A DNA stretch of 64,000 nt from Octopus sinensis (lineage: Eukaryota). The position numbers and the translations under genes are program-made. The stretch lies in the NCBI RefSeq assembly GCF_006345805.1, contig NC_042998.1, positions 91,760,001 through 91,824,000 on the forward strand, in the 5' to 3' direction. Shown here one piece after another: positions 1,835 through 38,376 of this stretch (positions are counted from its first letter, which is position 1; every line of letters starts with the position of its first letter). The notes under the pieces were generated by a model. It was not told the origin of the DNA. It was given only the letters and a program-made list of their open reading frames with translations, and made no database searches.

Positions 1835-2140
1835 ATGTGCCATCTCCACCTGTTGGCCCACTGGTTATCTCAAATGTCACCTACAATTCAGCTGATCTTG
1901 AATGGAAACCATCTGAAAATGATGGTGGAACTTCCATTACAGGATATTTGGTTGAATACAGAACAGCTACCAGAACCACATGGTCAAAGGCAGCAACAGT
2001 GGATCCAAAACAGACAACATATACATGCAGCAATTTGATGGAAGGAACAGAATATTACTTCAGAATTATTGCTGTCAATTCTGAAGGATATAGCCATCCT
2101 CTGGAATCAACTGATGTTACAAAACCAATGAGGGATTTGG
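1835..2140 (+). CDS. FN3 exon 1 (class A, 9-mer unit 1)
   Basis: AG/GT, phase 1-1, 306 nt; VPSPPVGPL...KPMRDL. Confidence 0.92.
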
Positions 2141-2883
2141 GTAAGGATTTAAATTATACATAGTTGATGATTCATTCATTAAAATTTTACCCTATCACAA
2201 AACAAATGTGAGATGAGATCTTAGTAAGTCTTATTTGATAAGGATTTAGTGTTTTTCATCAGTGATATATCTCCTTTTGTAAAATTTCACAATGTTGTAC
2301 ATACACTTTGTTTTATATTGCTATCATGGAAGCAATATTTAAATATTGATAATATACAAGATAAAAGTTATATGAGATTTGTATTAGTGATTCAGAATAA
2401 CTTTAAAATATTCATTATTTCTCTCATGATTTGATTTTAAGCACATACACCCACACATACACATGCTAAATTGTATTTAAATAATATAGGCTTCATAGAA
2501 TAGGTGCTGGTATGGCTATGTGGTTAAGAAGTTTACTTCTGGGGATCCTGTTCCACTGTTTGGTATCTCAGTCAGGAGCCCACTGTCCTGTAAGTGACAA
2601 TAGCTCATTTTATCTCCACAAGAACATACGATTATGACACTGTCAAATCAGGATAAGTTACTGAAAATGCTTTGTATTTACCCCAACTTTAAACTAAAGA
2701 GGTTATATTCTTGAACTGAACATTCCTCATCCAATCATGGGGAAATATTATCATGTTTGAAATAAGTGTGAGTTGGCAAAATGCAGAACATCCAGCCATA
2801 GAAAGTCTACCTCAACTAATTCTGTCTTACGCAAGCATCAAAAAGTGAATGTTAAAACAATGATGATGAAATACTTAAATCTA

Positions 2884-3054
2884 GGTGCAGGAGTGGCTGT
2901 GTGGTAAGTAGCTTGCTTACCAACCACATGGTTTCGGGTTCAGTCCCACTGCGTGGCACCTTGGGGAAGTATCTTCTACTATAGCCTCAGGCTGACCAAA
3001 GCCTTGTGAGTGGATTTCATAGACGGAAACTGAAAGAAGCCCGTTGTATATATG

Positions 3055-3085
<31 letters not shown>

Positions 3086-3296
3086 ATATGTTTGTGTGTC
3101 TGTGTTTGTGCCCCCAACATCGCTTGACAACCAATGCTGGTGTGTTTACATCCCCGTAACTTAGCGGTTCAGCAAAAGAAACCAATAGAATAAGTACTAG
3201 GCTTACAAGGAATAAGTCCTGGGGTCGATTTGCTTCACTAAATGTGGTGCTCCAGCATGGCCACTGTCAAATGGCTGAAACAAGTAAAAGAGTAAA
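2884..3296 (+). mobile_element. tRNA-derived SINE (family 1) with internal TA/TG microsatellite
   Basis: Head ggagtggctgtgtggtaagtagc...ggttcagtcccactg has A/B-box-like motifs. Related copies are at 15634(-), 36771(+), 55360(+) and 60064(-). Confidence 0.75.
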
Positions 3297-3410
3297 TGAA
3301 CATTCATTAACAAGCAATATATTCTTTAAAGAATTTGAAAGTATTTTCTTCTATTGATAATTTATTTCTCTCTATTGTATCAATTGCTTAACATTATTAA
3401 CAATATCAAA

Positions 3411-3620
3411 GGCAGCAAGCTGACAAAATTATTAGCATGTCAGGCAAGATGCAGCTCAGCATTTTATCTGTCTTTATGTTCTGGGTTCAAATTCTGCCAA
3501 GGTTTATTTTGCCTTTCATCCCTTTGGGGTCAATAAACTAAGTACCAATGAAATACTGGGGTTGGTGTAATTGACTAGTCCCCTCCTCCAAAATTTCAGG
3601 CCTTGTGCCTTTAGTAGAAC
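3411..3620 (+). mobile_element. SINE (family 2)
   Basis: ggcagcaagctgacaaaattattagca...gggttcaaattctgcc...gcctttcatcc; related copies at 20601(+), 22690(+) and 35470(-). Confidence 0.6.
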
Positions 3621-3883
3621 ATATTAATTAGATCTATCAAAAGATAAAGGAACCCTTGTTTTCAATAGAATTTGAAACCAGCATTGCAAGTTGCAAAAAA
3701 ATCTGTCAATTTGTAATACTCTCATTGATTACGGAGATGAACAAAGACTCTTCTTGGTGGCAGATTACATCTACATTGGCATATATAAATGTACATAGTA
3801 AAGAGTATGAAACATATTTTTAATATCACAACATTTTTATTGTTTTGCTTGCATGGAACTTATATGTATTATTTCATTTCTAG

Positions 3884-4186
3884 CTCTACCAGGACCACCT
3901 GTCAATGTCCGAGCTAGCAGAGTTGGTGAAGACTTTGTTGAACTTGAGTGGAATCAACCAAAATCAGATGGAGGAACACCAATTACTAAATACCATGTTG
4001 AAATATCTCCATATAAATTAGGAAACTGGACTAAGCTGGCAACTGTTGGAGCTTATGATACATTCTGTAAAGCTACGAGACTTGAAGAAGATATGGACTA
4101 CTATTTCTCTGTATGTGCTGAAAATAAAATTGGAAAAGGTGAAGCTACTGAAACATCGAAACCTGTCACCACAAAGAAGGGACTTT
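3884..4186 (+). CDS. FN3 exon 2 (B1)
   Basis: AG/GT, phase 1-1, 303 nt; LPGPPVNVR...TTKKGL. Confidence 0.92.
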
Positions 4187-4331
4187 GTAAGTATTTTCAC
4201 TTGAATATTTGCAGAAAAATAAATTTATACTTGAAATTAGAATATCATGTTTATTTAAATTATAATCTAGTTAAAAGTAGACAGAAGTATTACAAGAAAG
4301 ATGTTTATATAAATTATAAATTTACTTTCAG

Positions 4332-4637
4332 TGGTTCCATCCAAACCAATTGGTCCTCTTACTGTTACCGATGTCCAACGTAAATCTATCAGCATCAAAT
4401 GGAAAGCACCATCTGATGATGGTGGTTCTCCTATAATTGGATACATCATAGAAAAACGTCCCGAGTCTGCTCGATACTGGTCAAAGGCTGATAAAGTTCG
4501 TGCAGACACCACAGATTATTGTGTTAGGGATCTCCAAGAAAGAACTATGTATCACTTCAGAGTAATTGCTGAAAACAAAATTGGAGAGAGTGAACCTTTG
4601 GAAACTAAGGATGCTACAATGGCCAGAAGTCCATTTG
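4332..4637 (+). CDS. FN3 exon 3 (C1)
   Basis: 306 nt, phase 1-1; VPSKPIGPL...ARSPF. Confidence 0.92.
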
Positions 4638-4845
4638 GTAAGTTTAGTCATTATATATTGAATGTATTTCTTGAAAATTTTGCTTTTAATAGTAAAACAA
4701 AATGTTACATTCAAAATAATTGAAATAACAAAAGTATTTTCATTGAAAAGGCAAAATAATGATCCACCTAAATTTCCATTAATATTCATCACTAACCTCA
4801 ATATACTGAGTGTTATATTACATATATTTCCTATTTATTTCTTAG

Positions 4846-5151
4846 ATGTGCCATCTGCACCAATTGGTCCATTGGAGATCACAAATGTCACCAATAACTC
4901 TGCTGACTTGAGCTGGAAACCATCTGCCAATGATGGTGGTACACCAATAACTGGATACATTATTGAACACAGAATAGATTCCAGAACCTTCTGGACTAAA
5001 GCAGGCACTGTTAATGAGAAAACTACCACATTTACAGTACCAAATCTTACAGAAGACACAAGTTACCATTTCCGCGTCTTTGCTGTTAATGCTGAAGGAC
5101 AGAGCAAACCACTTGAATCTACTGATGTCACAAAACCAGTGAGGAAGATTG
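4846..5151 (+). CDS. FN3 exon 4 (D1)
   Basis: 306 nt, phase 1-1; VPSAPIGPL...KPVRKI. Confidence 0.92.
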
Positions 5152-5282
5152 GTGAGTAATAATCTATTTCTCATTAGAATTTTGTCTTCAGATTTTCAAA
5201 ACTTTGTATTTATATGGTAGGATATTAAAGATTATCAGAGAATTTTGTGTATTAAAAATATTTTATTGGAAATGTTTTTCAG

Positions 5283-5588
5283 AACCACCAAGTGCACCAA
5301 TTTACTTCAGAGCTACACAAGTTGGTCCTGACTTTGCAGTCTTGGAATGGAAGAAACCACATTCAGATGGAGGTTCTAAAATCACCAATTACATCATATC
5401 TGAAATGGGTGGTACATCATCTGATGTGAAGACTAAAGTGAAAACTGTATCAGCTTTTGAACATACTTGTCATTTGAGAGACTTGAAACAGAATCTGTCC
5501 TACTACTTCTGTGTTCAAGCTGAGAACAAAGCTGGTCTAAGTCCTTACTGTAATGCAGAATATGCAGTTACACCAATGCGACCTCTTG
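5283..5588 (+). CDS. FN3 exon 5 (E1)
   Basis: 306 nt, phase 1-1; PPSAPIYFR...TPMRPL. Confidence 0.92.
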
Positions 5589-5708
5589 GTAAGATATTTG
5601 ATATCTCTATTTAATTTTTGTTGATAGATCTTAAACTTTCTTGGTATTTGATGTGAGTTTAACTTGAGAGACATTATTCTATCATTGTGTACTGTTTTGT
5701 ATTTTTAG

Positions 5709-6014
5709 AAAAACCATCGAAACCAATTGGTCCTCTGAAAACCTATGATATTGAGAAAACATCTATTTCCATTTCCTGGAAAGCTCCAGAAGATGATGGA
5801 GGTAGTCCTCTCACTGGTTACATTATTGAGAAGAAAGAAGCTAACAGACAATACTGGAACAATGTGGCTAAGGTAGCACCATCAGTGACCAACTACCGTG
5901 TTGAGGATCTGAGACAGAACTGTGAATATGACTTCAGAGTTACTGCAATTAATAAAATTGGTCACAGTGATCCATTAGAGACTGATGCTTCAACAATGGC
6001 CAAGAGCTCATTCA
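5709..6014 (+). CDS. FN3 exon 6 (F1)
   Basis: 306 nt, phase 1-1; KPSKPIGPL...AKSSF. Confidence 0.92.
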
Positions 6015-6388
6015 GTAAGTCAAATATTTTGCTTCTCATTGATAGTCATTTGTTTATATATTCTTTAGTGTTGTTTTCTTTGTTAGCTTCCTGTTATTGA
6101 ATGGTTCTTGTTTAGAAATGAGTATATAATCATTAGAATTTATGACGATATATTAGTTTCTTTTTATTGATAAAAACATTAATTTTTACTAATTATTTAA
6201 CTTAATTTACCAAATGATATACGCATATGGTAAAAGTCTGAGAAGGAATGTTAAAATAATATTTTTTTTATTGATTGAACAGTTCAATATTTTTAATATT
6301 GGGAAAATGAATGTTGTTGTATTTCAGATCCGTATCTTTGAATAAAATTTCAGAGCAACACATAATATTTCTCTTTATTTGTTTTTAG

Positions 6389-6694
6389 GTGTACCATCTC
6401 GTCCTAAAGGGCCCCTTGAAGTTACCAAAGTCTCTTATGACTATGTGGATCTTGAATGGAGAGCTCCTGACAGTGATGGAGGTACTCCAATCACTAAATA
6501 CATTGTTGAAGTAAGATCTGCTGCACGCATGTCTTGGAACAAAGCAGAAGAAATTGATCCAAAATCTACTGTTGCCAGAGTTACAGGTTTAGTCGAGGGT
6601 ACAGAATATTACTTCCGTGTGATTGCTGTCAATGAGGAAGGAGAAAGTCCACCCTTGGAGACATCAGAATCTACGATACCTTCCAGAGAGAAAA
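6389..6694 (+). CDS. FN3 exon 7 (G1)
   Basis: 306 nt, phase 1-1; VPSRPKGPL...IPSREK. Confidence 0.92.
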
Positions 6695-6819
6695 GTAAGT
6701 GAAATATCTCTCTGTATTTTTGCATATTGTGGATTGTTTCCAAATATTATGAGTTATTTAGATGCCTTACATGTTCTGGATAAACTAAATTTTTATGTCT
6801 ACCATTTTTACCTTCATAG

Positions 6820-7122
6820 TGCCTCCTGGAATTCCTATTGCTTTCATGGCTTCAAGAATTGGCAAAGACTATGTCAATCTTCAATGGAGACATCCTAAAG
6901 ATGATGGTGGTTCAGCCATTCTCAAATATATTATTAAAATGAGGAAAGATACAAAATCTGATTGGGTCAAACTGATGACAATTGATGGTAGGGAAACAGC
7001 TTACCGTGTACCTGACTTAACTGAGGGTACTGAATACTACTTCTCAGTTAATGCAGAAAACAAAGTTGGACCTGGAAAGTGTGCTGAACTTCCTGAAGCT
7101 GTTGTTCCAACAAGAGAAGCAA
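6820..7122 (+). CDS. FN3 exon 8 (H1)
   Basis: 303 nt, phase 1-1; PPGIPIAFM...VPTREA. Confidence 0.92.
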
Positions 7123-7301
7123 GTAAGTATCTCAAATGACACCTGTTTACAGATATATTCCATAAAATATTGATTTGAAATAAATAAAAAAAATATTTAT
7201 GAAAATAACTGAAGATACATAAGAATTTAAAGAATTAAATATGTTCATAATTCTAATTTTTTAACAATTTAAAAATATTGTTTGTACCTTGTTTTTTTTA
7301 G

Positions 7302-7607
7302 CTGTACCTTCATGTCCTACTGGTCCTCTTGACATTACTGATGTCCAACGTACTAGCATCAGTATTAAATGGAAGGCACCAAAGGATGATGGCGGTTCAC
7401 CAATTATTGCTTACAATGTTGAGAAGAAGCATGCTAAAGCCCATATATGGAGTAGGGTGGATCAAGTGGATGCTTCAACATATGAAATGTGTGTTAGAGG
7501 CCTTTATGAGAAGAATGAATATCTCTTCAGAGTTATTGCTGTCAACAAGATTGGACAGAGTCCACCTCTTGAGACAGATGGAGCTACTTTAGCTCGTAGT
7601 CCATTTG
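7302..7607 (+). CDS. FN3 exon 9 (I1)
   Basis: 306 nt, phase 1-1; VPSCPTGPL...ARSPF. Confidence 0.92.
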
Positions 7608-10876: not shown

Positions 10877-11688
10877 GTAAGTTCAATTATTTCAAAGTGA
10901 ATGTATCATTGAAAATTTGCTTTTAATGGTAACTAAGACAATTTAAACACCATATAAAAAAAATGGCAACATAAAATGTGCAAACCAAGCTCCTTCACTT
11001 TGTTAATTTTACAAATTGAATTTATTAGTCATTATTATTTAGTCCAATTGGGATAAATGGAGTGAGTACTAGCAAAATATTAATATTAATTTACTTGACT
11101 GTAGCACTCTCAAAAAGGTTAGAAATCATTATTATTCATGTTACAGAGGGTGGTGAAAGGTAGAGTCAGTTGATAGTTGAACAAAATGCCTTGAAATATT
11201 CAGTTATGTGTTTTCACATTCTAATTCATTTTATACTTGGGTCAATTAATTTTCAATCTTTCAACATTAACTATTGATGTAGCAACATCTAAATTAAGAA
11301 ATTTCATAAAACACCTAATTTGTAGAATACTTATTGTACTGTGATTATTTCTGGATTCTGTAATTCTGTTATAAAATCTTCCCACTCCACATCAGACAAA
11401 AAGAGAAAAGACTTCAATACATATATCAATATACTCCTGTTTATTTCACAAGGGAGTGTCTTAATCTTTATAAGCAAATGTATGTACGACTTATATGTGA
11501 CAAAAATGTATGTGCAATAAGTGCTAAAATAAAATAACGAATGAAATAAAAATTGGATGTACAAGTGCAATAGCTGTGGCCATTTAGCTTAAATATTTTA
11601 AGAAGCTGCATGAAATGTATCAAAGAATCTAACAACAATAATAGCTTGAAAGATTATTCATTCATCTATGTTTTTAATTATTTCTTAG

Positions 11689-11994
11689 ATGTGCCATCTG
11701 CACCAGTTGGTCCATTGGAGATCACAAATGTCACCAATAATTCTGCTGACTTGAGCTGGAAACCATCTGCCAATGATGGTGGTACACCAATAACTGGATA
11801 CATTATTGAACACAGAATAGATTCCAGAACCTTCTGGACTAAAGCAGGCACTGTTAATGAGAAAACTACCACATTTACAGTACCAAATCTTACAGAAGAC
11901 ACAAGTTACCATTTCCGTGTCTTTGCTGTTAATGCTGAAGGACAGAGCAAACCACTTGAATCTACTGATGTCACAAAACCAGTGAGGAAGATTG
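11689..11994 (+). CDS. FN3 exon 13 (D2)
   Basis: 306 nt, phase 1-1; VPSAPVGPL...KPVRKI. Confidence 0.92.
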
Positions 11995-12126
11995 GTGAGT
12001 AATAATCTATTTCTCATTAGAATTTTGTCTTCAGATTTTCAGAAGCTTTGTATTTATATGGTAGGATATTAAAGATTATCAGAGAATTTTTTGTATTAAA
12101 AATATTTTATTGGAAATGTTTTTCAG

Positions 12127-12432
12127 AGCCACCAAGTGCACCAATTTACTTCAGAGCTACACAGGTTGGTCCTGACTTTGCAATCTTGGAATGGAAGAAA
12201 CCACATTCAGATGGAGGTTCTAAAATCACCAATTACATCATATCTGAAATGGGTGGTACATCATCTGATGTGAAGACTAAAGTGAAAACTGTATCAGCTT
12301 TTGAACACAGTTGTCATTTGAGAGACTTGAAACAGAATCTGTCCTACTACTTCTGTATTCAAGCTGAGAACAAAGTTGGTCTAAGTCCTTACTGTAATTC
12401 AGAATATGCAGTTACACCAATGCGACCTCTTG
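12127..12432 (+). CDS. FN3 exon 14 (E2)
   Basis: 306 nt, phase 1-1; PPSAPIYFR...TPMRPL. Confidence 0.92.
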
Positions 12433-12552
12433 GTAAGACATTCAATATCACTGTGTAATTTTTGTTGATAGATCTTAAACTTTCTTGGTATTTGATGTAA
12501 GTATAACTTGAGAGACATTATTCTATCATTGTGTACTGTTTTGTATTTTTAG

Positions 12553-12858
12553 AAAAACCATCGAAACCAATTGGTCCTCTGAAAACCTATGATATTGAGA
12601 AAACATCTATTTCCATTTCCTGGAAAGCTCCAGAAGATGATGGAGGTAGTCCTCTCACTGGTTACATTATTGAAAAGAAAGAGGCTAATAGACAATACTG
12701 GAGCAATGTGGCTAAGGTAGCACCATCAGTGACCAACCACCGTGTTGAGGATCTGAGACAGAACTGTGAATATGAGTTCAGAGTTACAGCAATCAATAAA
12801 ATTGGTCTTAGTGATCCATTAGAGACCGATGCATCAACAATGGCAAAGAGCTCATTCA
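12553..12858 (+). CDS. FN3 exon 15 (F2)
   Basis: 306 nt, phase 1-1; KPSKPIGPL...AKSSF. Confidence 0.92.
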
Positions 12859-13141
12859 GTAAGTTATATATTTGAATTGTCTCATATAATCAATGTCTTA
12901 AAATTTTTTTGATGTAGTATTAGTTACTAATTATGTAACGTTTTACTTCATAAAAGTTTTTGTGATTACCTTATAATCTTTATAAATTTTATAAGCTTAA
13001 TAAATTTCACTTGGTTTTGAGAAAAAGTTAAATTTCTTATCTTCCTTATTTGAACTGATTTTGTATTTGAAATTTTATGTTTATACATTTGCAAATAAAT
13101 GTATGGAGCGGTACATTTTATTGTTTCTCTGTGTTCTCTAG

Positions 13142-15281: not shown

Positions 15282-15633
15282 GTAAATATTTTGAAATTTA
15301 TTCTTTTATATTATATTTTATCCTTTCCTTCTTAATCTCTGCAATCTAAAATATATGATATAATACTTTATCCATAGAAAATTATTTTATTTTATCATCA
15401 AATGACATGTTTGAATTGGAGAAAAAAAATCCACACACACACACATATATAGTTAGTATGTTTACAAGTCCAATAGTAGTACAATTAATGAGAAGAAATT
15501 GGCACAGTGTTTCAGGGTTATAGTTGTTTGACAAGTGACTTGATTTGAGATCATGTTGTGATACTGAAACAACTGCATCAGAGAAGAGTCAGGACAACCA
15601 TTTAAAACACACTCATATAGTTCCATCATCCTT

Positions 15634-15968
15634 TATCTTTTACTTGTTTTAGTCATTGGATTGTGGCCATGTTGGGGCACCACCATGAAGGGTTTTAGCC
15701 AAACAAATCAACCCTAGTTTTAAGTCTGATATTTATTCTAACACTCTCTTTTGACAAACCACTAAGTTACAGGGGCATAAATCAATGCAGATTGTCAAGG
15801 GGTGGTGTGGCACGCGTGCACACACACACACACATTTACCATTTCCACTCACAAGACTCTAGTCAATCTGGTGCTATTGTAAATGACACTTGCCCAAGGT
15901 GTCATACAGCAAAGCTGAACCTGAGACCACATGGTTGGGAAGCAACCTTCTTAACCATACAGCCATGC
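15634..15968 (-). mobile_element. SINE family 1, reverse orientation
   Basis: Reverse complement of the 2884 copy (…gacacttgcccaaggtg…gaacctgagaccacatggttggg…). Confidence 0.65.
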
Positions 15969-16179: not shown

Positions 16180-16485
16180 ATGTTCCATCTGCTCCTGTTG
16201 GTCCACTGAAAGTAAGCAATGTTACCATAGATTCTGCTGACTTGGAATGGGAACCTCCAGAAAAAGATGGTGGTAGTCCACTTACTGGTTATGTCATTGA
16301 ATACAGGACTAGTACAAGATCGACATGGTCCAAATCTGGAATGGTTGACGCAAAATCTACAAAATATACTGTTCCAAACCTGTTGGAGGGTAATGAATAT
16401 TTCTTCCGCATTATTGCTGTCAATGATGAAGGACCAAGCCGGCCCTTAGCTTCAACAGAAATTGTTAAACCAATGAGAACATTAG
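16180..16485 (+). CDS. FN3 exon 19 (A3)
   Basis: 306 nt, phase 1-1; VPSAPVGPL...KPMRTL. Confidence 0.92.
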
Positions 16486-16615
16486 GTAAAATGCATTTTC
16501 ATAATTTATCTTTTTCTTTTATTACTCATTGTTTATAAAATTTAGTTGTTTAAAACGTTCATTTATTTGGTTATCAAGTTCAAAATTGATATCTGTTTGT
16601 GTTTATCTTCTTCAG

Positions 16616-16918
16616 CTTTGCCTGGAGTCCCAGTAGATCTGAGAGCCAGCAGAGTCGGTGAAGATTTTGTTGAAATGGAATGGGATGCACCTAAATCTGA
16701 TGGCGGTTCTGCAATAATTAACTATCATTTGCAAATATCTGCATTTAAGCCTGGAGACTGGCAAAAACTTGCTAAAGTTTCTGCTTATGATACATATTGC
16801 CGAGCTGTTCGTCTTGAAGAGGACATGGATTATTACTTTGCTGTCTGTGCTGAAAATAGTCTTGGTAAAGGTGAATTTTGTGAAATGACAAAACCAGTCA
16901 AAACCAAACGAGGATTAC
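16616..16918 (+). CDS. FN3 exon 20 (B3)
   Basis: 303 nt, phase 1-1; LPGVPVDLR...KTKRGL. Confidence 0.92.
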
Positions 16919-17272
16919 GTAAGTATTCTAGTTTCTACTATATAATATATAATTGAATTTTATACATTTGTTTATATGGTCCTCAACCTCTTGGATTTTG
17001 TCAAACCATACCATCTATACCAACATGGAAAACAAAGCTGAATTGATGAGGATGATATTCTTATGTGTATTGTTCATGAGATTGTGTGTGTGTGTGTGTG
17101 TGTGTGTGAACATATGTTTTTAAAATAATATAAAAGTTTACAAGTCTTTAAATTATATATATTATGCTGACAAAGTATTTTCTCCTTTTCTTTACTATCA
17201 ATGCTAAAAAAGTAAGCTGAAATAACTTTCTGTTAAAATCGTTTTAATATGTTACTTTTTTATCATATACAG

Positions 17273-23428: not shown

Positions 23429-23961
23429 TATAACTGGGCCCCACCTGCAAGGTCATGCACTGTATATCATGATGAGATCACCATGTCATGCACATATGGT
23501 TGTGATGCATGTGCCAGGTGTACCCTTATCAGGTGGGTAATTATGTTGGGTATGCTGAGCTTCATATATTTGTACCTCAGTGTCACTTTGATGGCATGTG
23601 CTGCTCTCTCACTCAATAATAGTAATAATAATGATGATGATGATGATGATAGCTAACAGATTTGTTAGAGCATCAGACAAAATTCCATGTGGTATTTTGT
23701 TCTAGGTCTTAACATTCTGAATTCAAATCATATCAAGGTTAATTTTAACTTTGATCCTGGTTGGGATGTCAATAAAATAGAATACCAGTTAGTATTAGGG
23801 TATAATTTAAGTGACTAAAACTAAGTTGTTTGTCTTAATTTCTGGTCTCATGCCTACATTAATAACAACTGTTACTAATTTTCCAAATATTTCTAAATAT
23901 CAGATCCTTTTGTTTAAATTTTAAGATTAGTATTCACATACAATTTCTTCTTCCTTCTCAG

Positions 23962-24264
23962 CACCTCCTGGAAAACCCACTGATTTGCATACAAGTAAAA
24001 TTGGCAGAGACTTTGTTGCACTTGAATGGAAACATCCCAAAGAAGATGGTGGTTCAAGAATCACAAAATACATCATTAAGAAGCAAGATGATAAGAAGAC
24101 TGACTGGTCACGGGTAGCTACTACTGATGGCTCAGACAGAAGAGTGAAGATAGATAATCTTACTGAAGGCACAAAGTATTATTTCTCAGTTGCTGCTGAG
24201 AATAAAGCAGGAAGTGGTCCAGCAGCAGAAATGCCAAATGGTGTTGTACCTGTTAAGGAATTAA
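23962..24264 (+). CDS. FN3 exon 26 (H3)
   Basis: 303 nt, phase 1-1; PPGKPTDLH...VPVKEL. Confidence 0.92.
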
Positions 24265-24314
24265 GTAAGTTGATAATATAAATATTTTAAACTGTATCCA
24301 TAATTATGTAATTC

Positions 24315-24990
24315 TATGGTATTATTAAAAGTTTCCAGGGTGCATGTGTTCTGATTGTACTACTAAAACCAAAGTGTATGCACAATTGAGTATCATTGGT
24401 ACCCAGCTTACTGGGCCAGTCAACAAAATAGGTATCGTGTTATCTACTCATATTTAATTATTACATGAGATTTTGTAACATTGTATGAGAGCTGCTCTGT
24501 GACAATTTTGAGCAACTTGGTTGCATCAAATTTTTCTGAAAGCTTGACAAATCTATTCTCAAGGTCTGCAAAACACTTTGTCAGGCTTTTGCCAAACACT
24601 TTTTGAAGTGAATCATAAGGTTTTAGAGTAGCAAATACATTTTAAGAGTAGTCAAGTGTTAGTTCAAGATGATGAGCATTCAAAGCAACCATTCAGTTAC
24701 AAAGGGCTAGAACGTGTGAAAAAAAAATATATGAACTCACACAGGAGAACTGTTGCCAAACAAACCATCATCCTCTTCTCCTGAATGGGATCAGTTATAG
24801 AGTTTGTAGGAGATTCTTATGGAAAACATGAACATACTTCATCTTGACATGAAGTGTGTTCCCTGGCTTTTGCCATTTGATCTGAAGCAGCAGTATCTTG
24901 GTTTGTATTTTGAACCACATGAAATGGTTAACAAATGATCTACCTTTCAGCCCTAGAATCATCAAAATGGTAGGTGACTATGAAACAGAA
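24315..24990 (+). mobile_element. Decayed mariner-family transposase remnant, intron 26
   Basis: Broken frames read EQLGCIKFF*KLDKS...QAF, VQDDEHSKQP and GISYRVC...KCVPWLL, resembling mariner N-terminal and VPRLL motifs. There are many stops and the boundaries are approximate. Confidence 0.6.
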
Positions 24991-25450
24991 TTGCAAAAAG
25001 TATTGGAATATTTCTGTGATGATTTTTCAGCATAGTAAACATGGATTTATAGCTGTCTACACTCCCAAGAGAACTATTTTAAAGAGGATGATATATGAAA
25101 ATATATATGTGAAACACATTATGGAGTAATGGTGTACATTTTTTCTACTTTTTCTGGTTCAAGAACTTTCCAATACTATCTTAGAATTTTATTAAATACT
25201 TATATTTATTTTGCTTTCTTTCTCATAAATTAGTCATGCATTTTCAAATTTCCTCTATTTTTGCTGAAAACACACTCACAGACATATCTCCTTTCAAACA
25301 CATGGGTTTACTTAGTATGGCATTCTTTTTTGTTGCGTGACTATGTTGTTTTTTGTATTTTATAAAATGATCCACCAGATTTTATTTTTGCTGTTCATTA
25401 TAAAGAAGAAAATATTCAAACTCTAAATATATTTCTTTTAATATTTTCAG

Positions 25451-25756
25451 CTGTTCCTTCCAAACCACAAGGACCTCTTGAAATTACTGATTTCAGTCGT
25501 ACTTCAGTAAGCATTAGATGGAAAGCTCCTCTAACAGATGGTGGTTCTCCAATAACTGATTATATAATTGAAAGAAAAACAACTAAAGGACTTCTTTGGA
25601 CCAAAGTTGACACAGTGGAGTCATCCTTATTTGACTACACAATAACAAACCTTTATGAGAACACTGACTACTTGTTTAGAGTTTTGGCTGTGAACAGTGT
25701 AGGAACAAGTGAGCCATTGGTCTGTGATAGTGCAGTCACTGCAAAATCTCCATACA
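25451..25756 (+). CDS. FN3 exon 27 (I3)
   Basis: 306 nt, phase 1-1; VPSKPQGPL...AKSPY. Confidence 0.92.
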
Positions 25757-25936: not shown

Positions 25937-26242
25937 GTATACCATCTCCTCCTGTTGGTCCATTGGTAATTTCAAATGTGACAATGAATTCTGCTGATCT
26001 TGAATGGAAACCATCTAAAAAAGATGGTGGATCTCCAATTACTGGTTATCTTATTGAGTATAGAACATCTGCAAGAACAACATGGTCAAAAGCAAGCTTC
26101 ATGGATGCTAAAACTACAAATTACACTGCTTCTAATCTATGTGAAGGCAGTGAATATTTCTTCCGTGTCATTGCAGTTAATTCAGAAGGACAGAGTCAGC
26201 CCTTAACTGGATCTGATTTCGTAAGACCAATGAGAGAATTGA
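25937..26242 (+). CDS. FN3 exon 28 (A4)
   Basis: 306 nt, phase 1-1; IPSPPVGPL...RPMREL. Confidence 0.92.
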
Positions 26243-26423
26243 GTATGTATCTATTTAAGATTATTTTTTTAATGTATTTTTAAGAATTAAAGAAGTCAAA
26301 CTGTCCAAAGTTGTTTTCTATAAATTTATAACATTATATTTAATAAAGAACAATTAATACTTTTTTATATCCTTATTAAATTTGATGAAATAAATATTCA
26401 TAAGTACTTCAATTTTTTCCTAG

Positions 26424-26726
26424 GCTGCCCACTACCTCCAGTTGATTTAAGAGCCACAAGAATTGGAGAAGATTTTGTTGAAATAAAATGGGATCCACCA
26501 AAGTCTGATGGTGGAAGTGCTATAGAATGCTATGTAGTCTATTTGTCTCAACATAGCCCTGATGATTGGAAACGTGTAGCTTTACTCAGTGCATATGATA
26601 CAAACTTATGCATTACTGATCTTCTGGAAGATATGAATTATTACTTTGGTGTATGTGCTGAAAACAAAATTGGAGTCAGTGAACCAGTTGAAACAAGTAA
26701 ACCAGTAACAACCATGAAAGGATTGC
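26424..26726 (+). CDS. FN3 exon 29 (B4)
   Basis: 303 nt, phase 1-1; CPLPPVDLR...TTMKGL. Confidence 0.9.
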
Positions 26727-27512
26727 GTAAGTAGTTTTCTTTCTATTTAAAAATTTTTGTGCCAGTTCAGAAATAAATATTATGTGTTATTTACAAAATA
26801 ACGAATAATTACTGAAATGTAATGAAGCAGATAAACAAATGAACTTGTTGATTCTTTTGTAGAAGATAATCTCAAAGAATATAATTTGCATTTGTATGTG
26901 CTACAAATAATAGAAGAATTATTATTACTCAGTGGATTATTATATCTTTAGGAAAACTGTGTAGATAAATGAGATAAAAGTTTTGCAAAACCTTTGATTA
27001 ATGCAGGTGAAAAATTAGAATATCTTGTGTGATATCAGTGAATGATAACAAAGTAAAAAGATCGTACATATTTTGAGAAAAGAAAGAAAATAAAGTTTGC
27101 ATAAATGTGTGTAAAGCAATAACATATTTTTGTGCCACAAACTGAGTCACTATACTGAAAACATTGGAAAGGCTATATCAATATGAGTTTAAAGCAGAAA
27201 AAATGGTTGTAGCAACTATCGTGACTATGTGACTGAACAATTATATGATGGGGATCAACAGTTGAATATTTATTGTGTAAGAGAAAGGCTTTGATTTAGT
27301 GATTCTATACTTGCACTTAATTTTCTACAAAAGTCATAATAATCTGCAATAATAGAAATCAAATTAGTTATGTTCATTGTATTATTTTACTGTTATATTG
27401 AGATAAATTTTCATTTCATAATTTTGATAAAAAATACTTCTGAATTACTTTTAACTTTGGACTAAACTATATTCATATTTCTTCAAAATTTTGTTTTTCT
27501 TACCTTCCTTAG

Positions 27513-27815
27513 TTGTACCTGCTCGTCCAACTAGTCTTGTTGTAACTGATGTTCAACGAGATTCTATTGCAATCAAATGGAAACCACCAAAAGATGATGG
27601 CGGATCTCCAATTCTTTGTTATATTGTTGAGAAACGTCCAACATCAAGCAAATTTTGGTCAAAGGTAACCAAAGTAGATGCTGATACAACAGAACTATAT
27701 GTTCGAAATCTCCAAGACCATACTGAGTACCATTTCAGAGTAATTGCTGAGAACAAAGTCGGACAGAGTGAACCTCTTGAAACACAAGATTCCACTATGG
27801 CTAAAAGTCCATTCA
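27513..27815 (+). CDS. FN3 exon 30 (C4)
   Basis: 303 nt, phase 1-1; VPARPTSLV...AKSPF. Confidence 0.92.
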
Positions 27816-28035
27816 GTGAGTATGCTTCTACATCTACTGACATACTTCCCATTTTCCAATAACTGATGGTCCAGACATAATTATGAGAGGCCACTGAAAT
27901 TTCCTATGATTATATTAATTAATAACATACCTTTTTTTTTGTTTTATAATTTCATGTCTAACATTTTGTTTTTCAATACGAAACTCACCAAATTATTACA
28001 TACATGAAATAATCATATTCTCTTATGCTTTCTAG

Positions 28036-28341
28036 ATGTGCCATCTCGTCCAACTGGACCATTGGAAATTAAAGATGTCACCCACAACTCAGTTGACATG
28101 GCCTGGAAACCACCACAGAAAGATGGTGGCAAGCCTGTTACAAGTTATATCATTGAATACAGAGTACTTTCTAGAACTTTCTGGTCTAAAGCTGGTACAG
28201 TAGATGGAAAGACAACTACATTTACTGCAAACAACTTGATGGAAGATACAGATTACATGTTTAGAGTAACAGCTGTCAATGATGAAGGTCAGAGTCCACC
28301 TTTGGAATCTGATGAATCAACAAAGCCTATCAAGAAAATTA
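28036..28341 (+). CDS. FN3 exon 31 (D4)
   Basis: 306 nt, phase 1-1; VPSRPTGPL...KPIKKI. Confidence 0.92.
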
Positions 28342-28467
28342 GTAAGTTTGCAAAAAAATTAAAATTTCTTTTTATCATTCAATTTCTTTATTTTACTTTT
28401 CTTTTCTTTCTGCATGACTTTACTACAACTACATAGACTAAATAATTACTAATAAATTGTCTTGCAG

Positions 28468-28770
28468 ATCTTCCTGGTCAACCTATTTATTTCCGTGCTA
28501 CGAAAATTGGTGCTGACTTTGCTGTTATGGAATGGAAGCCACCAATTGATGATGGAGGTTCTAGAGTTACTGGTTATGTAATACTGAAGCGAGAATCGTT
28601 GGATGATGAGCGCACAAAAATGACATCAGTCACTTCTCATGAATTATCTTGCACATTGAAAAATCTCAGACAAAATGTTAATTACTACTTCTCTATATGT
28701 GCTGAGAATAAAGTTGGTCTTAGCAAACCAGCTGATGCAGATCATGCTGTATGCCCAATGAGACAGCCAC
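28468..28770 (+). CDS. FN3 exon 32 (E4)
   Basis: 303 nt, phase 1-1; LPGQPIYFR...CPMRQP. Confidence 0.92.
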
Positions 28771-29309
28771 GTAAGTGATTTATATACTATATATCTCATC
28801 ATCATCATTGTAATCATTATCATGACATTTGTTTTTAAGTCTGTTTTTTTAAGTCCATACTGGCTTTCGTAAATGGGACTTCTTGAGATAGTTTTCTATG
28901 ACAGTACACTCTTCCAGACACCTGTCTTTATTTTTTTAAAGTAAGGTATTTTAATTCATGTCAAACTATCAAACCTTAAACAATGTCTTAGTAGTGTACT
29001 CAAGCAATGTCAATGCAAAATCACATGGAATCCAACATACATACATACATGCACATGTAAATCAGGCCTTTGTATTGTTTTAGTTTACCAAATTTCACTC
29101 ATAAGGCATTGGTAATCCCAAAACTAGTGAAGAAAACACTTGCCCAAGATGTCATTAAGTGGTATTGAACCTGAAACCATGTGGTTTCAATGTGAATATC
29201 TGTGACTATATATTTAATTATTCAGTCATTTTGTTAAATATTTTTTAAATAAATAATCACATAATATTTTATTACCATAATAAATTTGTTTTAATATTTA
29301 ATTCTCTAG

Positions 29310-29615
29310 AAAAACCATCAAGTCCAAGAGGACCTATCAAAGTAACTGATATCATGAAAACTTCAATGAATATTTCATGGAAACATCCAGAAGATGATGG
29401 AGGATCTCCTCTGACAGGTTATCTCATCGAACAAAAAGAAAGTAAGCGTCAGTACTGGAATAAGGTTCAGCAAGTGCCTGCCACTGTTACATCCTTTAAT
29501 ATCCAGAATTTAAGAGCAAACACTGAATATGATTATAGAATTTCTGCTGTAAATAAAATAGGCTACAGTGAACCACTGATTTCAGATGCATCAACAATGG
29601 CCAAGAGTCCATTCA
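29310..29615 (+). CDS. FN3 exon 33 (F4)
   Basis: 306 nt, phase 1-1; KPSSPRGPI...AKSPF. Confidence 0.92.
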
Positions 29616-30293
29616 GTGAGTATATTAAAACTCTTACATTAATTTTATATGATTATTATTTTGCTATTAAACTTATCTTGTGCAAATATAAACTGAAATT
29701 TATATCAGCTGCATTATATTAATTAATTAGTTGCCAAATTACCCTAAAATTCATTACTTATTGTTTAGGAAGACACCACTAGAAAGTGTTTTTGTTACCC
29801 TATATATTTCTGTAAGAATTTAAAAACTTTCAGGGATAATAAATTTTTATGAATATATATTCCTTTTTTAGAAATATTTTGTATATCTGGATATGTTTTT
29901 CCATCTAGAAATAGCTTAAGTGAGTCTGATTATATTTTATGGTTGACTGTTCATCATAATGTTAGAAATTTACTTCTAAAATTGAAATGCTTGCAATTTC
30001 TCAGCTAGATAAAGATAATTATTAAATTAAGAGTCTCTTGACCAAGTCCATCAATTGAGTCTAAAGGAACTCAGCATTTACTTTTATTTCCATGTTAACT
30101 ATAAACCTATTGAGCATGAAGTTATAATTACATTTTATCTTTAAATATTTTGATGAGACTCTAAATTATCATAATTTTGGATGTTTTAGTATTGAACAGA
30201 AGACTCCATGAAATAAAATAGATTCATATACAGTTTTAGTTGAACTATTATAAAGATTTTCTTATTATTGATTTTTTAAATTTTTACTTACAG

Positions 30294-30599
30294 GTCCTCC
30301 AGGACGTCCTAAGGGTCCCCTTGAAGTCATTAAAATATCTTATGACTATGTTGATCTTGAATGGAAAGCACCTGATTCTGATGGTGGCAGTCCAATTACC
30401 AAGTATATTATTGAATACAAATCTGCAACTCGACCTAGTTGGCTAAATGCTGCAGAAGTTGAAGCTAATGTTAATGTTTATAGAGTTCTTGGATTAGCTG
30501 AAGGAACTGAATATTACTTCCGTGTCATTGCTGTCAATGAAGAAGGACAGAGTCCACCTTTAGACACAACTGAAGCAACAATACCTTCTCGAGAAATAC
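30294..30599 (+). CDS. FN3 exon 34 (G4; correct frame absent from the ORF track)
   Basis: Translated by hand, open, 306 nt; PPGRPKGPL...IPSREI. Confidence 0.9.
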
Positions 30600-31068
30600 G
30601 TAAGTATAGTTTAAAGATTGAAAATTCTTTCTTGTCTGTCTTTATTTGTTGACTGTTAACTAAAATTGTTCAAAAATAGAATACCATATTCACTGTATTT
30701 GCTTATGAGTCATACCCCTAATTTAGTAATAAATCTTGGTAGAAAAATTTTCCCTTACACTTATAACTTTGCTCTATGCATAGATTGCACCCTAGTTTTT
30801 TTCAGTTAAAATCAAATATAAAATAGTGTGATTTATATATGAGTAAATATGATATATTCCTAAATTTATGATGTATGCCTACATCATAAAATATATAATT
30901 GAAATATTACCTGAAAATTCATGAACAATTAATTGCTAATATAATAAAATTATGATGTAATTGTTTCTGAAATTAAATTGAATGCAAAATGGTTTATAGA
31001 AAGTTCTTAATATTTATATTTTTATTGAATTACAAATAAATAAAAACTATTTTCATTTTACCTCATAG

Positions 31069-31371
31069 ATGTACCTGGATCACCAGTTAATGTAAGAGCT
31101 AGCCAAATTGGTGAAAATTATGTTTGCCTTGAATGGAGACCACCAAAGAGTGATGGTGGTTCTAAGGTTTTGAAATATACTGTTAAAAAGCGAAAAGACA
31201 AGAAGGATGAATGGGAACGCCTAATGGTTGTTGAAGGTTTAGATACATCATTCAAAGTAACTAATCTGGAAAAGAATGTTGGTTATTACTTCTCTGTCTC
31301 AGCTGAAAATAAAGCTGGTATGGGAAAACCATGTGAAACTGTTGGTTCTGTTATCACTCAACGAGAAGCAA
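31069..31371 (+). CDS. FN3 exon 35 (H4)
   Basis: 303 nt, phase 1-1; VPGSPVNVR...ITQREA. Confidence 0.92.
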
Positions 31372-31449
31372 GTAAGTATTTTATTGAGAATTGAATCCTT
31401 CATTGATTAACTTAAGTCAGCTTTTTAAATATAGTAGCATTAAAACCAT

Positions 31450-31501
<52 letters not shown>

Positions 31502-32027
31502 TAATAAACAGATTGCCTTAGCTCCTCATGTTGCATAAAGTTTCATGGAAGTGAAAAAAAACATAAGCTCCTAAGACATATGAAGACAAAGCAAAGATAT
31601 ATATATGTCAGATTTTGGTTTAGAACTAAATCTCAATGTTTGTAATGAGATTTAGGTTAGATTGGAGTCTATGGATGTTAGAGAATTAGAAGGAAGGGTA
31701 TTCAGCAGGATTATTTATTTTCTTTACTGTTTTTAGCATTTAGAGAAGTGTAGAGGATGTAGTTATGTAGTCAGATCATGATAACTTTCCATCAGAAGCT
31801 TTGTCTACATTCTTAAATTTGCTAAATTCATTCATGGCTCAGAGGCAATGTTCAGCCAAAAAGTGTGATGTATTGATCACTCTAAAAGCAATAGGGGAGC
31901 AGGCTTCTACACTCACTGAAGAAATAAAATAATCATTTTTTATATCCATAAAATAACATCATTGCAATAATAATTATGATAACTTTATTATTGTCTTGTT
32001 TTAAAATAGACTACTCTTATATTTCAG

Positions 32028-32333
32028 CTGTTCCTTCAATGCCTACTGGACCCATTGAAATTGTTGACGTACAGCGTACTTCAATCAGCCTAAGATGGAA
32101 ACCACCTCAGGATGATGGTGGTTCTCCAGTCATGTTCTACCAAGTTGAAAAGAAAACTCCTAAATCATTAATTTGGTCGAGAGTTGAAAAAGTTGAAGCA
32201 AGTACATTAGAAGTGTGCTGCACTAATCTATATGAGAAAAATGAATATCTATTCAGAGTCATTGCTGAAAATATGCTTGGACAGAGTCAACCATTAGAAA
32301 CTGAAGCAGCTACTACAGCAAAGAGCCCATTCA
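32028..32333 (+). CDS. FN3 exon 36 (I4)
   Basis: 306 nt, phase 1-1; VPSMPTGPI...AKSPF. Confidence 0.92.
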
Positions 32334-33025: not shown

Positions 33026-33343
33026 GTAAATACCCTTTTATCATTCTTATTTATTTTCCAAGCAACTACTATATAATACCACATATGAAAATTACCTTAA
33101 AGAGAACAAGTATAGAAAATTATCAGAATTTCACAGAATCCTCTAATAGACACACCTAAAGTAAAATGTTTTTTAAATTAGATGACACTAATTTTTATGA
33201 AAAGATTTATATACCATTATCATTGGCAGCAGCAGCATTTGAGTCATATCTACTTTTTCTATGTCGGTATGGGTTGGAGAGCAATACAGTGTACAATATA
33301 GCAACAATTAAACTGACCCTTAAATATATCCCTTTAAAATCAT

Positions 33344-33590
33344 CATCATTATCATCATCGTTTAACGTCTGTTTTCCATACTAGCATGGGTTGGACGGTT
33401 TGGCCGGGATCTGGGAAGCCAGGAGGCTGCACCAGGCTCCAGTCTGATCTAGCAGTGTTTCTAAAGCTGGATGCCCTTCCTAACGCCAACCACTCAGTGA
33501 GTGTAGTGGGTGCTTTTTACATGCCACCGGCACAGGGGCCAGAGGAGGCTGGCAACATCCACGATCAGTTGGTGCTTTTTACGTGCCACC
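33344..33590 (-). mobile_element. SINE/LINE 3' tail, reverse
   Basis: catcatcg tttaacgtctgttttccatactagcatgggttggacgg. Confidence 0.7.
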
Positions 33591-35469: not shown

Positions 35470-35950
35470 CATAATCATTATCTATTTCTTTATTGCCCAC
35501 AGGGGGCTAAACATAGAGGAGACGAACAAAGACAGACAAAGGAATTAAGTCGATTATATCGACCCCAGTGTGTAACTGGTACTTATTTAATTGACCCCAG
35601 TAGGATGAAAGGCAAAGTTGACCTTAGCAGAATTTGAACTCAGAATGTAACAGCAGACGAAATATCACTAAGCATTTTGCCCAGCATGCTAACGATTCTG
35701 CCAGCATCATACCATTATCATCATCATCATCATCATTGTTTAACATCTGTTTTTCATGCTGGCATGGGTTGGGCATCTTGACAGAAGCTGGCTAGCTGGA
35801 AGGCTGCACCAGGCTCCAGTCATCATGTTTTGGTATGGTTTCTATATCTGGATGGACCTCCTGACACCAACCACTTTACAGAGTATACTAGGTGCTTTGT
35901 AGATGGTGCTGGCACAAGTGCTTTTAATATGGCATCAGCACAGACATGAA
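35470..35950 (-). mobile_element. Adjacent SINE family 2 and SINE/LINE tail, both reverse
   Basis: ...ggcaaagttgaccttagcagaatttgaactc...gctaacgattctgccagc, then catcatcattgtttaacatctgttttcatgctggcatgggttgg. Confidence 0.65.
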
Positions 35951-36413
35951 ACCTATTTTCCCATGCTGTACAATATGGAAACCAGCGAGAAAATGGATTA
36001 CATGTTAGAAAATTATATGTTGCACCAAAATTTCAGGAATGCAATGCTTTCATAACAAAAGGAATACTTGTACTATTTGATTTCTGATAATATTTCAGTT
36101 CACTTTTGTTTTATTGATTTAATTTTTTATGACTTTTCAGTTCATAAAGTTAATAAAGTTACTCTATTATTTGGTTGTGTATGTGTGTGTGTATGTATAT
36201 ATATGTATGCTTATAAATATGTATATATGTGTGTGTGTTAATACCAATATATTTACTTTGAATAAATGGAATCCACTTGTAAACATTAACCAAGAATAAA
36301 GTTTAATATATTTATTTATTAATAAAATAATTATTTTCTAAGCATTTAATTTCCAAATTCACGCAAATTTTAAAAATTCATTTTCTCATTCTGATATTTG
36401 TTTTCATTTTCAG

Positions 36414-36719
36414 ATGTCCCATCTCGACCAGTTGGACCATTAACAACACAAAATGTCACATACAAATCAATTGATCTTTCATGGAAGCCATCTGAAAAAG
36501 ATGGAGGAAAACCTATCACATCTTATCTTATTGAATACAAAGCTTCAACTCGTTCTTCCTGGTCGAAAGCTGGTTCAGTCGATTCCAAATCCACTTCTTT
36601 CACTGTTCATGACCTAAATGAAGATACTGAATATTTCTTCAGAGTCACTGCTCTCAATTCTGAAGGGAAAAGTCAACCACTGGAAACACTTGATACAACA
36701 AAAACTACTAAAAATATCT
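36414..36719 (+). CDS. FN3 exon 40 (D5)
   Basis: 306 nt, phase 1-1; VPSRPVGPL...KTTKNI. Confidence 0.92.
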
Positions 36720-36770
36720 GTAAGTTTTTAATTAGATTCTATCAAATAATTCATCTAAATAAAATTATCA

Positions 36771-37205
36771 TAGGCATAGGAGTGGCTGTGTGGTGAGTAG
36801 CTTGTTTACGAACAACATAGTTCCGGGTTCAGTCCCACTGCGTGGCACTTTGGGCAAGTGTCTTCTACTATAGCCTCAGGCTAACCAAAGTCTTGTAAGT
36901 GGATTTGGTAGACGGAAACTGATAGAAGCATGTCGTATATATGTATATATATATATGTATGTATGTGTGTGTGTGTATTTTTGTGTGTCTGTGTTTGTCA
37001 CCCCCCCCCCAACATTGCTTGACAACCGATGCTGGTGTGTTTACGTCCCCGTAACTTAGCATTAGGAAAGGCATCCAGCTGTAGAAACCTTGCCAGATCA
37101 GATCGGAGCCTAGTGCAGCCTCCTAGCTTGCCAGTCCTAAGTCAAACCGTCCAACCCATGGCAGTATGGAAAGCAGATGTTAAATAATGATGATGATCAT
37201 CATCA
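36771..37205 (+). mobile_element. SINE family 1 truncated and joined to a SINE/LINE tail
   Basis: Head ggagtggctgtgtggtgagtagc, body to gtaacttagc, then attaggaaaggcatccagctg...atgatgatg. Confidence 0.7.
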
Positions 37206-37318
37206 TCATTTAGTAATCTAGCTTCCATACTGACATGGCTTGGATAGTTTAACAAGAATGATAAGCTCTGACAAGTCAAAGGGCTATAATTGTGTGTGTG
37301 TGTGCATATGTATGTGTT

Positions 37319-37372
<54 letters not shown>

Positions 37373-37524
37373 TACATGTATGAATATATGTGCTTGTATA
37401 AATATATGTATATATTTGTGGGCATTTGGAGCAAGAGAAAGAAAGAAGTAGATAAAGAGTTTATTAGGCATAAATAAATGTATATTTTTCATGTTAATTC
37501 ACTATTACTTCTTTTCAATTTCAG

Positions 37525-37827
37525 ATATCCCAGACTCTCCTATTCACTTAAGAGCTACCAAAATAGGACCAGATTTTGCAGTTTTAGAATGGAGACCACC
37601 TATTTCAGATGGTGGATCTAAGATTACCGACTATGTAATTTATAAACGTTTTGATATTTATGAAGACCGAGAGAAAATAACTTCAGTCAGTGCATATGAA
37701 CATACATACACTGTAAAAGCTTTGCGAGAAAATGTTAATTACTACTTCTCTGTCTGTGCTGAAAATTCAGTAGGCTTAAGCAAGCCATGTGATGCTGATC
37801 ATGCAGTTACACCAAAACGACCTTTAG
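37525..37827 (+). CDS. FN3 exon 41 (E5)
   Basis: 303 nt, phase 1-1; IPDSPIHLR...TPKRPL. Confidence 0.92.
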
Positions 37828-38070
37828 GTATGTTTTTTCTTATTTAATTTCAAGAACATAATTAAAATTGAATATATTAAGTAGTTCATAATTTTATAAG
37901 CTTAAAATTCATTAAAGTATGTTTTTCATGTAGATATATGTTTTTAAGCAAAACAATATCAGAAATGTAGTATAGTACAAAATAGTTTTTCCATCTTTCT
38001 GTTCTTGTTTATATATTTTATTAACTATGTATTAATATTTATGGTTTCTTTCTCATATTTATTTATTCAG

Positions 38071-38376
38071 CTATTCCATCCGTACCAAGAGGTCCTATCA
38101 AAGTATTTGATGTCCTCAAAAACTCTGCCAGTATCAGCTGGAATGCTCCTGAAGATGATGGTGGCTCACCTCTCACAGGTTATATACTTGAAAAGAAAGA
38201 GTCTATTCGATCATTCTGGAGTCAAATTGATCGTGTACATGCAAATATAACATCTTATAATATTAAAGACTTGACTGAAGACACTGAATATGATTTCCGA
38301 GTAACTGCTGTCAATAGAGTTGGTAACAGTGATCCTCTTGTTACTGATTTAACAACAAAGATCAAAAGTCCATTTG
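38071..38376 (+). CDS. FN3 exon 42 (F5)
   Basis: Translated by hand, 306 nt; IPSVPRGPI...IKSPF. Confidence 0.9.

Follow-up and report, generated by a model that had tools for sequence, protein, structure and literature searches.

The seven- and eleven-domain super-repeats of titin are the textbook example of a protein ruler; titin domains are usually encoded singly, each by one exon of phase 1-1, and in nebulin seven modules correspond to each 38.5-nm period of the thin filament. Both titin and nebulin have been named as rulers (PMC2196875), the 11-domain super-repeat of titin being about 43 nm long (PMC10665226). The giant invertebrate thick-filament proteins twitchin, projectin and UNC-22 also contain titin-type fibronectin type III (FN3) domains, arranged with immunoglobulin (Ig) domains in an (FN3-FN3-Ig)n pattern and accompanied by a kinase. 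Mytilus twitchin has 24 Ig domains, 15 FN3 domains and a kinase (PMC12040844). Here we analysed a stretch of 64,000 nucleotides (nt) of Octopus sinensis (NC_042998.1, positions 91,760,001 to 91,824,000, forward strand), hereafter called the window, that carries a long uninterrupted array of FN3 exons belonging, in the reading that we favour on balance, to a giant gene of the titin/twitchin (connectin) family. An earlier note, made from the letters of this DNA, had described the interval 1835-38376 as a nested 3x3 super-repeat, in which a nine-domain period is built from FN3 triplets, and had suggested that triplet and nine-domain unit may serve as a molecular ruler for a filament lattice. In the literature searched, nested super-repeats made of FN3 domains only were nowhere described for titin-like proteins of invertebrates, and such arrays are not treated in a recent paper on connectin evolution (PMC12198301).

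The array resembles the titin A-band, with its 7-domain D-zone and 11-domain C-zone units, in the titin type of its FN3 domains, in the similarity of domain n to domain n+period over several units, in its growth by duplication of multi-domain blocks and in the position-specific conservation beyond the fold that is reported for titin (PMC10665226). Two features expected of a titin-type A-band super-repeat, the n to n+period similarity and the position-specific conservation, were found. Likewise, the [N/Y]PF linker known from FN3 tandems of titin (PMC10665226) has a counterpart in the ..SPF that follows the third FN3 subtype of the window. Unlike titin, however, the window holds 69 domains with no Ig among them, its period is nine (3x3) and not seven or eleven, its unit is estimated at ~36 nm and not 43, the unit is not conserved in the mollusc Lottia and no kinase is visible in the window. 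The nearest homologues are named 'twitchin-like', but identity with classical twitchin was rejected, the window having at least 69 FN3 domains and no Ig as opposed to the Ig-rich Mytilus protein. Nebulin shares the nesting of module and super-repeat along a filament, and the ~36 nm of the window unit is near the thin-filament period; its fold and family are nevertheless unrelated, and nothing here indicates actin binding by the window protein.

A nine-domain super-repeat of FN3 domains

An FN3 profile built from nine domains retrieved exactly 69 FN3 domains on the + strand, between 1835 and 61101, in agreement with the count of the earlier note, and zero on the - strand. Each domain is encoded by one exon, and all 69 exons (294-306 nt) show AG/GT boundaries and phase 1-1, with a polypyrimidine-AG acceptor five bases 5' of the first Pro codon and a donor cut between G and GT; once spliced, they give a frame of 6,994 amino acids (aa) without a stop codon. 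Members of all nine domain classes described below, as well as the four most divergent domains of the tail, matched Pfam fn3 (PF00041) with scores of 44.9-67.7 bits against a cut-off of 25, and are thus FN3 domains. Base 1835 is the start of exon 1 and base 38376 the end of exon 42, so that the interval originally indicated corresponds exactly to exons 1-42, where the clean classes end. The array is divided as follows, classes being designated A to I:

1835-7607, + strand: super-repeat unit 1, exons 1-9, classes A-I, 916 aa
8536-15281, + strand: super-repeat unit 2, exons 10-18, 915 aa; 84% protein identity to unit 1, mosaic
16180-25756, + strand: super-repeat unit 3, exons 19-27, 915 aa; ~63% identity to units 1 and 2, 60% to unit 4
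25937-32333, + strand: super-repeat unit 4, exons 28-36, 914 aa
32720-38376, + strand: partial unit 5, exons 37-42, classes A-F only; ~52% identity to the other units
38491-39908, + strand: exons 43-45, in G/H/I register, opening the tail collinear with Lottia domains Lo20-22
40932-61101, + strand: exons 46-69, non-repeating FN3 tail in the 1-2-3 subtype register, with a weak lag-6 signal
4832-6029, + strand: copy 1 of a recent gene-conversion or duplication tract, exons 4-6 with introns 4 and 5
11675-12873, + strand: copy 2 of the same tract, exons 13-15 with introns 13 and 14

Over domains 1-45, mean pairwise identity reached 0.648 at lag 9, 0.581 at lag 18 and 0.577 at lag 27, with lower values at lag 3 (0.463) and lag 6 (0.461) and 0.33-0.35 at all other lags. 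In 10,000 shuffles of the domain order, lag 9 gave 0.393 +/- 0.016 and lag 3 gave 0.393 +/- 0.015, the maximum being 0.459 in both cases. Leave-one-out assignment to the nine classes placed 42 of the 45 domains (D1-D45) correctly, the failures being D9, explained by the closeness of classes C and I to each other, D43 and D45. Since the assignment breaks at D43 and D45, the clean super-repeat comprises D1-D42, that is 4 2/3 units. The nested 3x3 organisation is therefore borne out both by the class assignment and by the domain-similarity autocorrelation, whose peaks at lags 3 and 9 lie above the maximum of the shuffles.

The aligned classes also carry the motifs that had been quoted for them: ..NSADLEW..TRTTWSK in class A, RVGE[DN]FVE in class B, VQR.SI.IKW..[YF]WSK in class C, IY/H-FRAT..G.DFA in class E and VSYDYVDLEW in class G. 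The middle FN3 subtype of each triplet is without GPL, as had been noticed, and has YYF.V.AEN; domains of subtype 3 end with ..SPF. In domains 43-69 a weak period of 3 to 6 is left, with the 1-2-3 register weakly kept and lag 6 slightly above lag 3. Both in the window tail (38491-61101) and in the FN3 run of Lottia, lags 6, 12 and 18 give slightly higher identity than lags 3, 9 and 15, a hint that the conserved tail may once have been built from a unit of six domains.

Units 1 and 2 form a mosaic, per-exon nucleotide identity between them ranging from 63 to 99%. The tract 4832-6029 is 96.8% identical to 11675-12873 over 1,199 base pairs (bp), two introns included (intron identities 0.92-0.98), although the exons adjoining it are only 63-91% identical; such a mosaic of tract and neighbours indicates recent gene conversion within the array, and the sequence of the 1.2-kilobase (kb) tract points to recent conversion or duplication between units 1 and 2. 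Elsewhere, intron pairs show background identity and are not alignable. Where exons of the same class are compared outside units 1 and 2, synonymous divergence (dS) is at least 0.75 and mostly above 1, near saturation, with nonsynonymous divergence (dN) of 0.1-0.5 and omega of ~0.1-0.5. We then considered 30 class-variable alignment columns, those where the class consensuses differ and which the FN3 fold hence does not require. Here, identity between old copies of one class is still 45.5%, as opposed to 21.5% when different classes of one subtype are compared, with dN 0.49 and dS about 1.45. Residues specific to each position, beyond the need of the fold, are thus held by purifying selection, and the nine positions have been kept distinct for a long time. 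Taken together, the diverged synonymous sites, the introns and the constraint on the class columns indicate that the period is neither an assembly artefact nor the product of a very recent duplication.

The gene extends beyond both edges of the window, neither end of the protein lying inside. After the last FN3 exon, one further exon of the same gene was recognised:

63279-63882, + strand: exon 70, 201 codons, rich in Q, S, Y and H

Together with the last base of exon 69, the bases after its phase-1 acceptor form a Glu codon, so that the junction reads ESQMALQ..., and the exon is followed by a GT donor at 63883, indicating that the gene continues past the window. Exon 70 has no Pfam domain match, and no match was found in Lottia, Lingula and Diadema. 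Compared with a close relative, it shows 87% identity, dS 0.17 and omega 0.37, with a single in-frame indel of 3 codons and the frame kept. The splice model is supported by P0265, a transcript-derived protein of a marine catalogue, that aligns without gaps to residues 6430-6991 of the spliced window protein (66% identity), spanning exons 64-69 across five predicted exon junctions. P0265 has also the same exon 69/70 junction, and exon 70 is matched end to end by its C-terminal region. As regards expression, this protein demonstrates that a homologue is transcribed. The window as a whole is AT-rich (about 32% G+C) and has the look of a eukaryotic gene with many short exons; its other long stretches without a stop codon are accounted for by alternative frames, remnants of transposons or sequence of low complexity.

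Relatives of the array

The best matches of an A-B-C triplet in PDB were the titin chains 8g4l_bm (E 6e-126) and 8q6t_I (E 2e-122), which are C-zone chains from structures of cardiac thick filaments, followed by the crystal structure of a titin triple-FN3 tandem, then by MyBP-C and myomesin and, after these, by extracellular FN3 proteins. Tandem FN3 domains closest to those of sarcomeric proteins, as expected in the titin/twitchin (connectin) family, are therefore present. The best named homologues are proteins called 'twitchin-like' in Lingula (40%) and Diadema (34%) and gene models with FN3 domains only in Lottia and Littorina, with vertebrate titins (~30%) after them; the database behind these names apparently holds proteins up to about 1,600 aa, so that full-length orthologues are not visible in it. 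No Ig domain was detected in either strand of the window, with E up to 10, by a profile derived from Lingula and Lottia Ig exons, for which Ig exons of an independent sea-urchin locus (Diadema) served as positive control. Interleaved I-set Ig domains, also typical of the family, are thus not found within the window, and in Lottia they precede the FN3-only run; they may still be present in the part of the gene outside the window. An attempt to map vertebrate titin FN3 domains onto subtypes 1-3 failed, and no equivalence with titin types A, B and C is claimed.

The most informative relative is the locus of Lottia gigantea (KB200919.1:182007-227802, two overlapping loci joined; models LOTGIDRAFT_141610 and 141638, annotated as 'fibronectin type-III domain-containing'). 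Its gene order is Ig-Ig-FN3x3-Ig-Ig-FN3, followed by an FN3-only run of 43 domains (Lo05-Lo47). Domains Lo08-Lo19 form four plain triplets, whose three subtypes and their order are those of the window, and the last three triplets are mutually 80-98% identical, indicating recent expansion in Lottia. Domains Lo20-Lo46 are instead collinear, one to one, with D43-D69 of the window (27 domains): mean identity along this diagonal is 0.449, compared with 0.385 +/- 0.009 (maximum 0.418) in 5,000 register-preserving permutations, and the diagonal partner is the best match among all 69 window domains in 9 of the 27 cases, against ~0.4 by chance. The Lottia locus is a probable orthologue. It differs from the window in having four plain triplets upstream of the tail, at the place of the 4 2/3 nine-domain units, and no domain resembling class E or G was found in it. 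It follows that the triplet and the 27-domain tail are ancient, and the nine-domain unit appears to be specific to this lineage; the block that immediately precedes the tail has grown independently in the two, in Lottia through triplets and here through nine-domain units.

In Lingula, the order is of Ig-FN3-FN3-FN3 repeats, then 15 FN3 domains in a row, then Ig-Ig-FN3-kinase-Ig. As a separate observation, three FN3 exons and one Ig exon occur twice in this locus (L004, 15875-17781 and 19049-20948, with 18321-18605 and 21488-21772) with near-identical protein, owing either to a very recent duplication or to an assembly duplication. In Diadema, three consecutive models of 2,203, 816 and 1,519 aa have FN3 matches only (about 45 domains) and are followed by mixed Ig/FN3 models. 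The FN3 runs of Diadema and Lingula gave flat lag profiles with no period; hence, among the sampled loci of Lottia, Lingula and Diadema, the super-repeat is not conserved.

When profiles of the nine classes and of the three subtypes were applied to 120 homologues, the classes did not carry over beyond the closest relatives. A whole-library search with the class E profile yielded no orthologue of class E or G, which is no proof of their absence, its list being swamped by many-domain proteins ranked by summed score; the long FN3-only proteins that it returned are 30-43% identical and without the triplet pattern. An exact look-up of one open reading frame of the window gave no match. A contig of a close relative (L001, 1-7864) encodes 12 FN3 domains in plain triplets, six of them within one exon (837-2651). 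This contig was rejected as proof that the close relative lacks the nine-domain unit, being too diverged and representing another part of the gene or a paralogue: its identity to the exons of the window does not exceed 71%, for two species that are only ~13% apart in DNA. The gene or genome of the relative therefore contains, at another place, one more array of FN3 triplets, in which introns have been lost.

The analogy with titin put forward in the earlier note thus finds support in homology, through the PDB matches, the twitchin-like and titin names, the related loci with Ig domains and the purifying selection on specific positions.

Interspersed repeats in the non-coding sequence

A SINE-like (short interspersed nuclear element) repeat of ~200 bp was found in both orientations, with 71-86% identity, in at least nine non-exon stretches, mostly introns. 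A second interspersed family, with copies of 130-430 bp, also occurs in introns, where some copies adjoin those of the first family.

332-557, 19133-19313, 22256-22475, 33339-33590, 35714-35916, 37056-37216, 55743-55941, 58075-58193, 61245-61388: copies of the SINE-like repeat
2889-3302, 15629-15965, 36778-37061, 55363-55491, 55927-56155, 60049-60481: copies of the second repeat family

Intron 61 (52785-53704, + strand) contains a probable remnant of a non-LTR (long terminal repeat) retrotransposon reverse transcriptase, whose match to Pfam RVT_1 (E=0.016) is below the cut-off; motifs near 53450-53704 resemble the C-terminal part of a LINE (long interspersed nuclear element) reverse transcriptase. 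Simple-sequence DNA fills 20376-20998 of intron 23, with poly-Ile, poly-Leu or poly-Tyr in all three + frames, and AT, TA and AC microsatellites are present at 19437, 31452, 47776, 53712, 58405 and 60291.

Periodic scaffold or ruler

With moderate confidence, the region can be read as an Ig-free, FN3-only rod segment of a giant titin/twitchin (connectin) gene, forming a periodic scaffold whose unit size would derive from duplication history and not from a conserved ruler length matched to a lattice. The basic building unit is an ancient triplet of three FN3 subtypes; three triplets have diverged in this lineage to give the nine-domain unit A-I, tandem duplication has then multiplied the nine-exon block at least four times (at least 4 2/3 units), and gene conversion between the first two copies has come later. 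The comparisons among copies and with Lottia show this order of growth, from triplet to nine-exon unit to tandem units, with conversion as a later event. Purifying selection on each position keeps the unit length constant and presents the same nine surfaces every 914-916 residues. By analogy with the titin A-band, the product is most likely a rod lying along a muscle filament, with periodic and multivalent binding sites.

Several observations weigh against this reading. At the level of single domains, titin FN3 matches have E values of about 1e-15, to be compared with 1e-14 to 1e-17 for Dscam, neogenin or contactin, so that the PDB evidence is to be considered moderate. Neither Ig nor kinase was found in the window, and P0265, past its last FN3 domain, consists of unique sequence that is not Ig or kinase; the gene is therefore only a candidate member of the titin family with kinase. 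The Lingula locus, which has the kinase, is related at best-hit level (about 40% identity), its FN3 run not being collinear with the window. The lineage-specificity of the unit draws mainly on one well-sampled species, Lottia, and the start of the array may lie outside the window. Furthermore, the complete units have kept a length of 914-916 aa while their synonymous sites became saturated, and the class-specific residues dispensable for the fold are under purifying selection, as would be expected of a true molecular ruler.

Under this latter explanation, triplet and nine-domain unit would be length-matched to the filament lattice, and the number of units would help to set filament or sarcomere dimensions, as in the titin C-zone; the homology to the FN3 domains of the thick-filament titin A-band is also in its favour. 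Lengths were estimated by scaling from the titin 11-domain unit (1,084 aa): at 915 aa x 43 nm / 1,084 aa, a unit comes to about 36.3 nm and a triplet to about 12.1 nm. Such estimates of 36 and 12 nm do not equal the 43-43.5 nm period and the 14.3-14.5 nm crown spacing. Molluscan thick filaments have a paramyosin period of 72.5 nm (PMC12040844), and two scaled units, 72.6 nm, come near to it, a correspondence that speaks for a ruler but is numerology and not a test; moreover, lag-18 identity is not above lag-9 identity. Any array produced by duplication of a nine-exon block would show a period of nine whatever its function, the FN3 runs of Diadema and Lingula are aperiodic and the unit is missing at the collinear position of Lottia. 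Because Lottia is without the nine-domain unit, a conserved, lattice-matched ruler is rated below the periodic scaffold, and we regard it as unlikely. Still more speculative is a specific form of the same idea, in which the FN3-only rod would act as ruler or template for paramyosin-cored thick filaments: the unit (~36 nm) would be half of the 72.5-nm period, six triplets would span five 14.5-nm crowns in a vernier-like fashion and lineage-specific changes in the number of units, nine-domain units here and triplets in Lottia, would tune the length of molluscan filaments. We give this little credence; if true, the array would be an Ig-free counterpart of the titin C-zone, in animals whose thick filaments differ greatly in length.

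Another reading, in which the FN3 array would be extracellular, belong to a protein of adhesion or matrix and be unrelated to muscle filaments, seems very improbable. The FN3 domains of Dscam, neogenin, contactin and receptor phosphatases are, taken singly, nearly as similar as those of titin, many long FN3-only proteins of other kinds exist and, the protein ends being outside the window, a signal peptide is possible. However, when several domains are matched together, only sarcomeric proteins (titin, MyBP-C and myomesin) stand at the top, homologues with a name are called twitchin-like or titin, I-set Ig domains occur in titin-like order in the collinear locus of Lottia, the Lingula best-hit locus has such domains and a kinase as well, and the long FN3-only proteins retrieved are just 30-43% identical and do not share the triplet pattern. 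That the periodicity is an assembly artefact, from collapsed or duplicated reads, or the array a decaying pseudogene, is hardly credible, since apart from the single 1.2-kb tract at 96.8% identity, and despite the apparent assembly duplication in the array of the Lingula assembly, all other copies are strongly diverged in synonymous sites and introns, 69 of the 69 exons retain open frame, splice sites and phase, omega is well below 1 and a homologous transcript agrees with the splice model.

For the periodic scaffold that we favour, the broader context is the way in which invertebrate thick filaments, often very long and built on a paramyosin core, are measured. With its 69 FN3 domains and no Ig, its clean 3x3 hierarchy, its constant unit length and its position-specific residues under selection, the array is a defined candidate for such a scaffold and one that can be put to the test. 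Lottia, where the same tail is preceded by triplets instead of nine-domain units, provides the contrast, as in a natural experiment, by which tuned periods may be told from inherited ones. Should the period be no more than the footprint of duplication, the array would stand as a warning that periodicity and purifying selection alone do not show a ruler.

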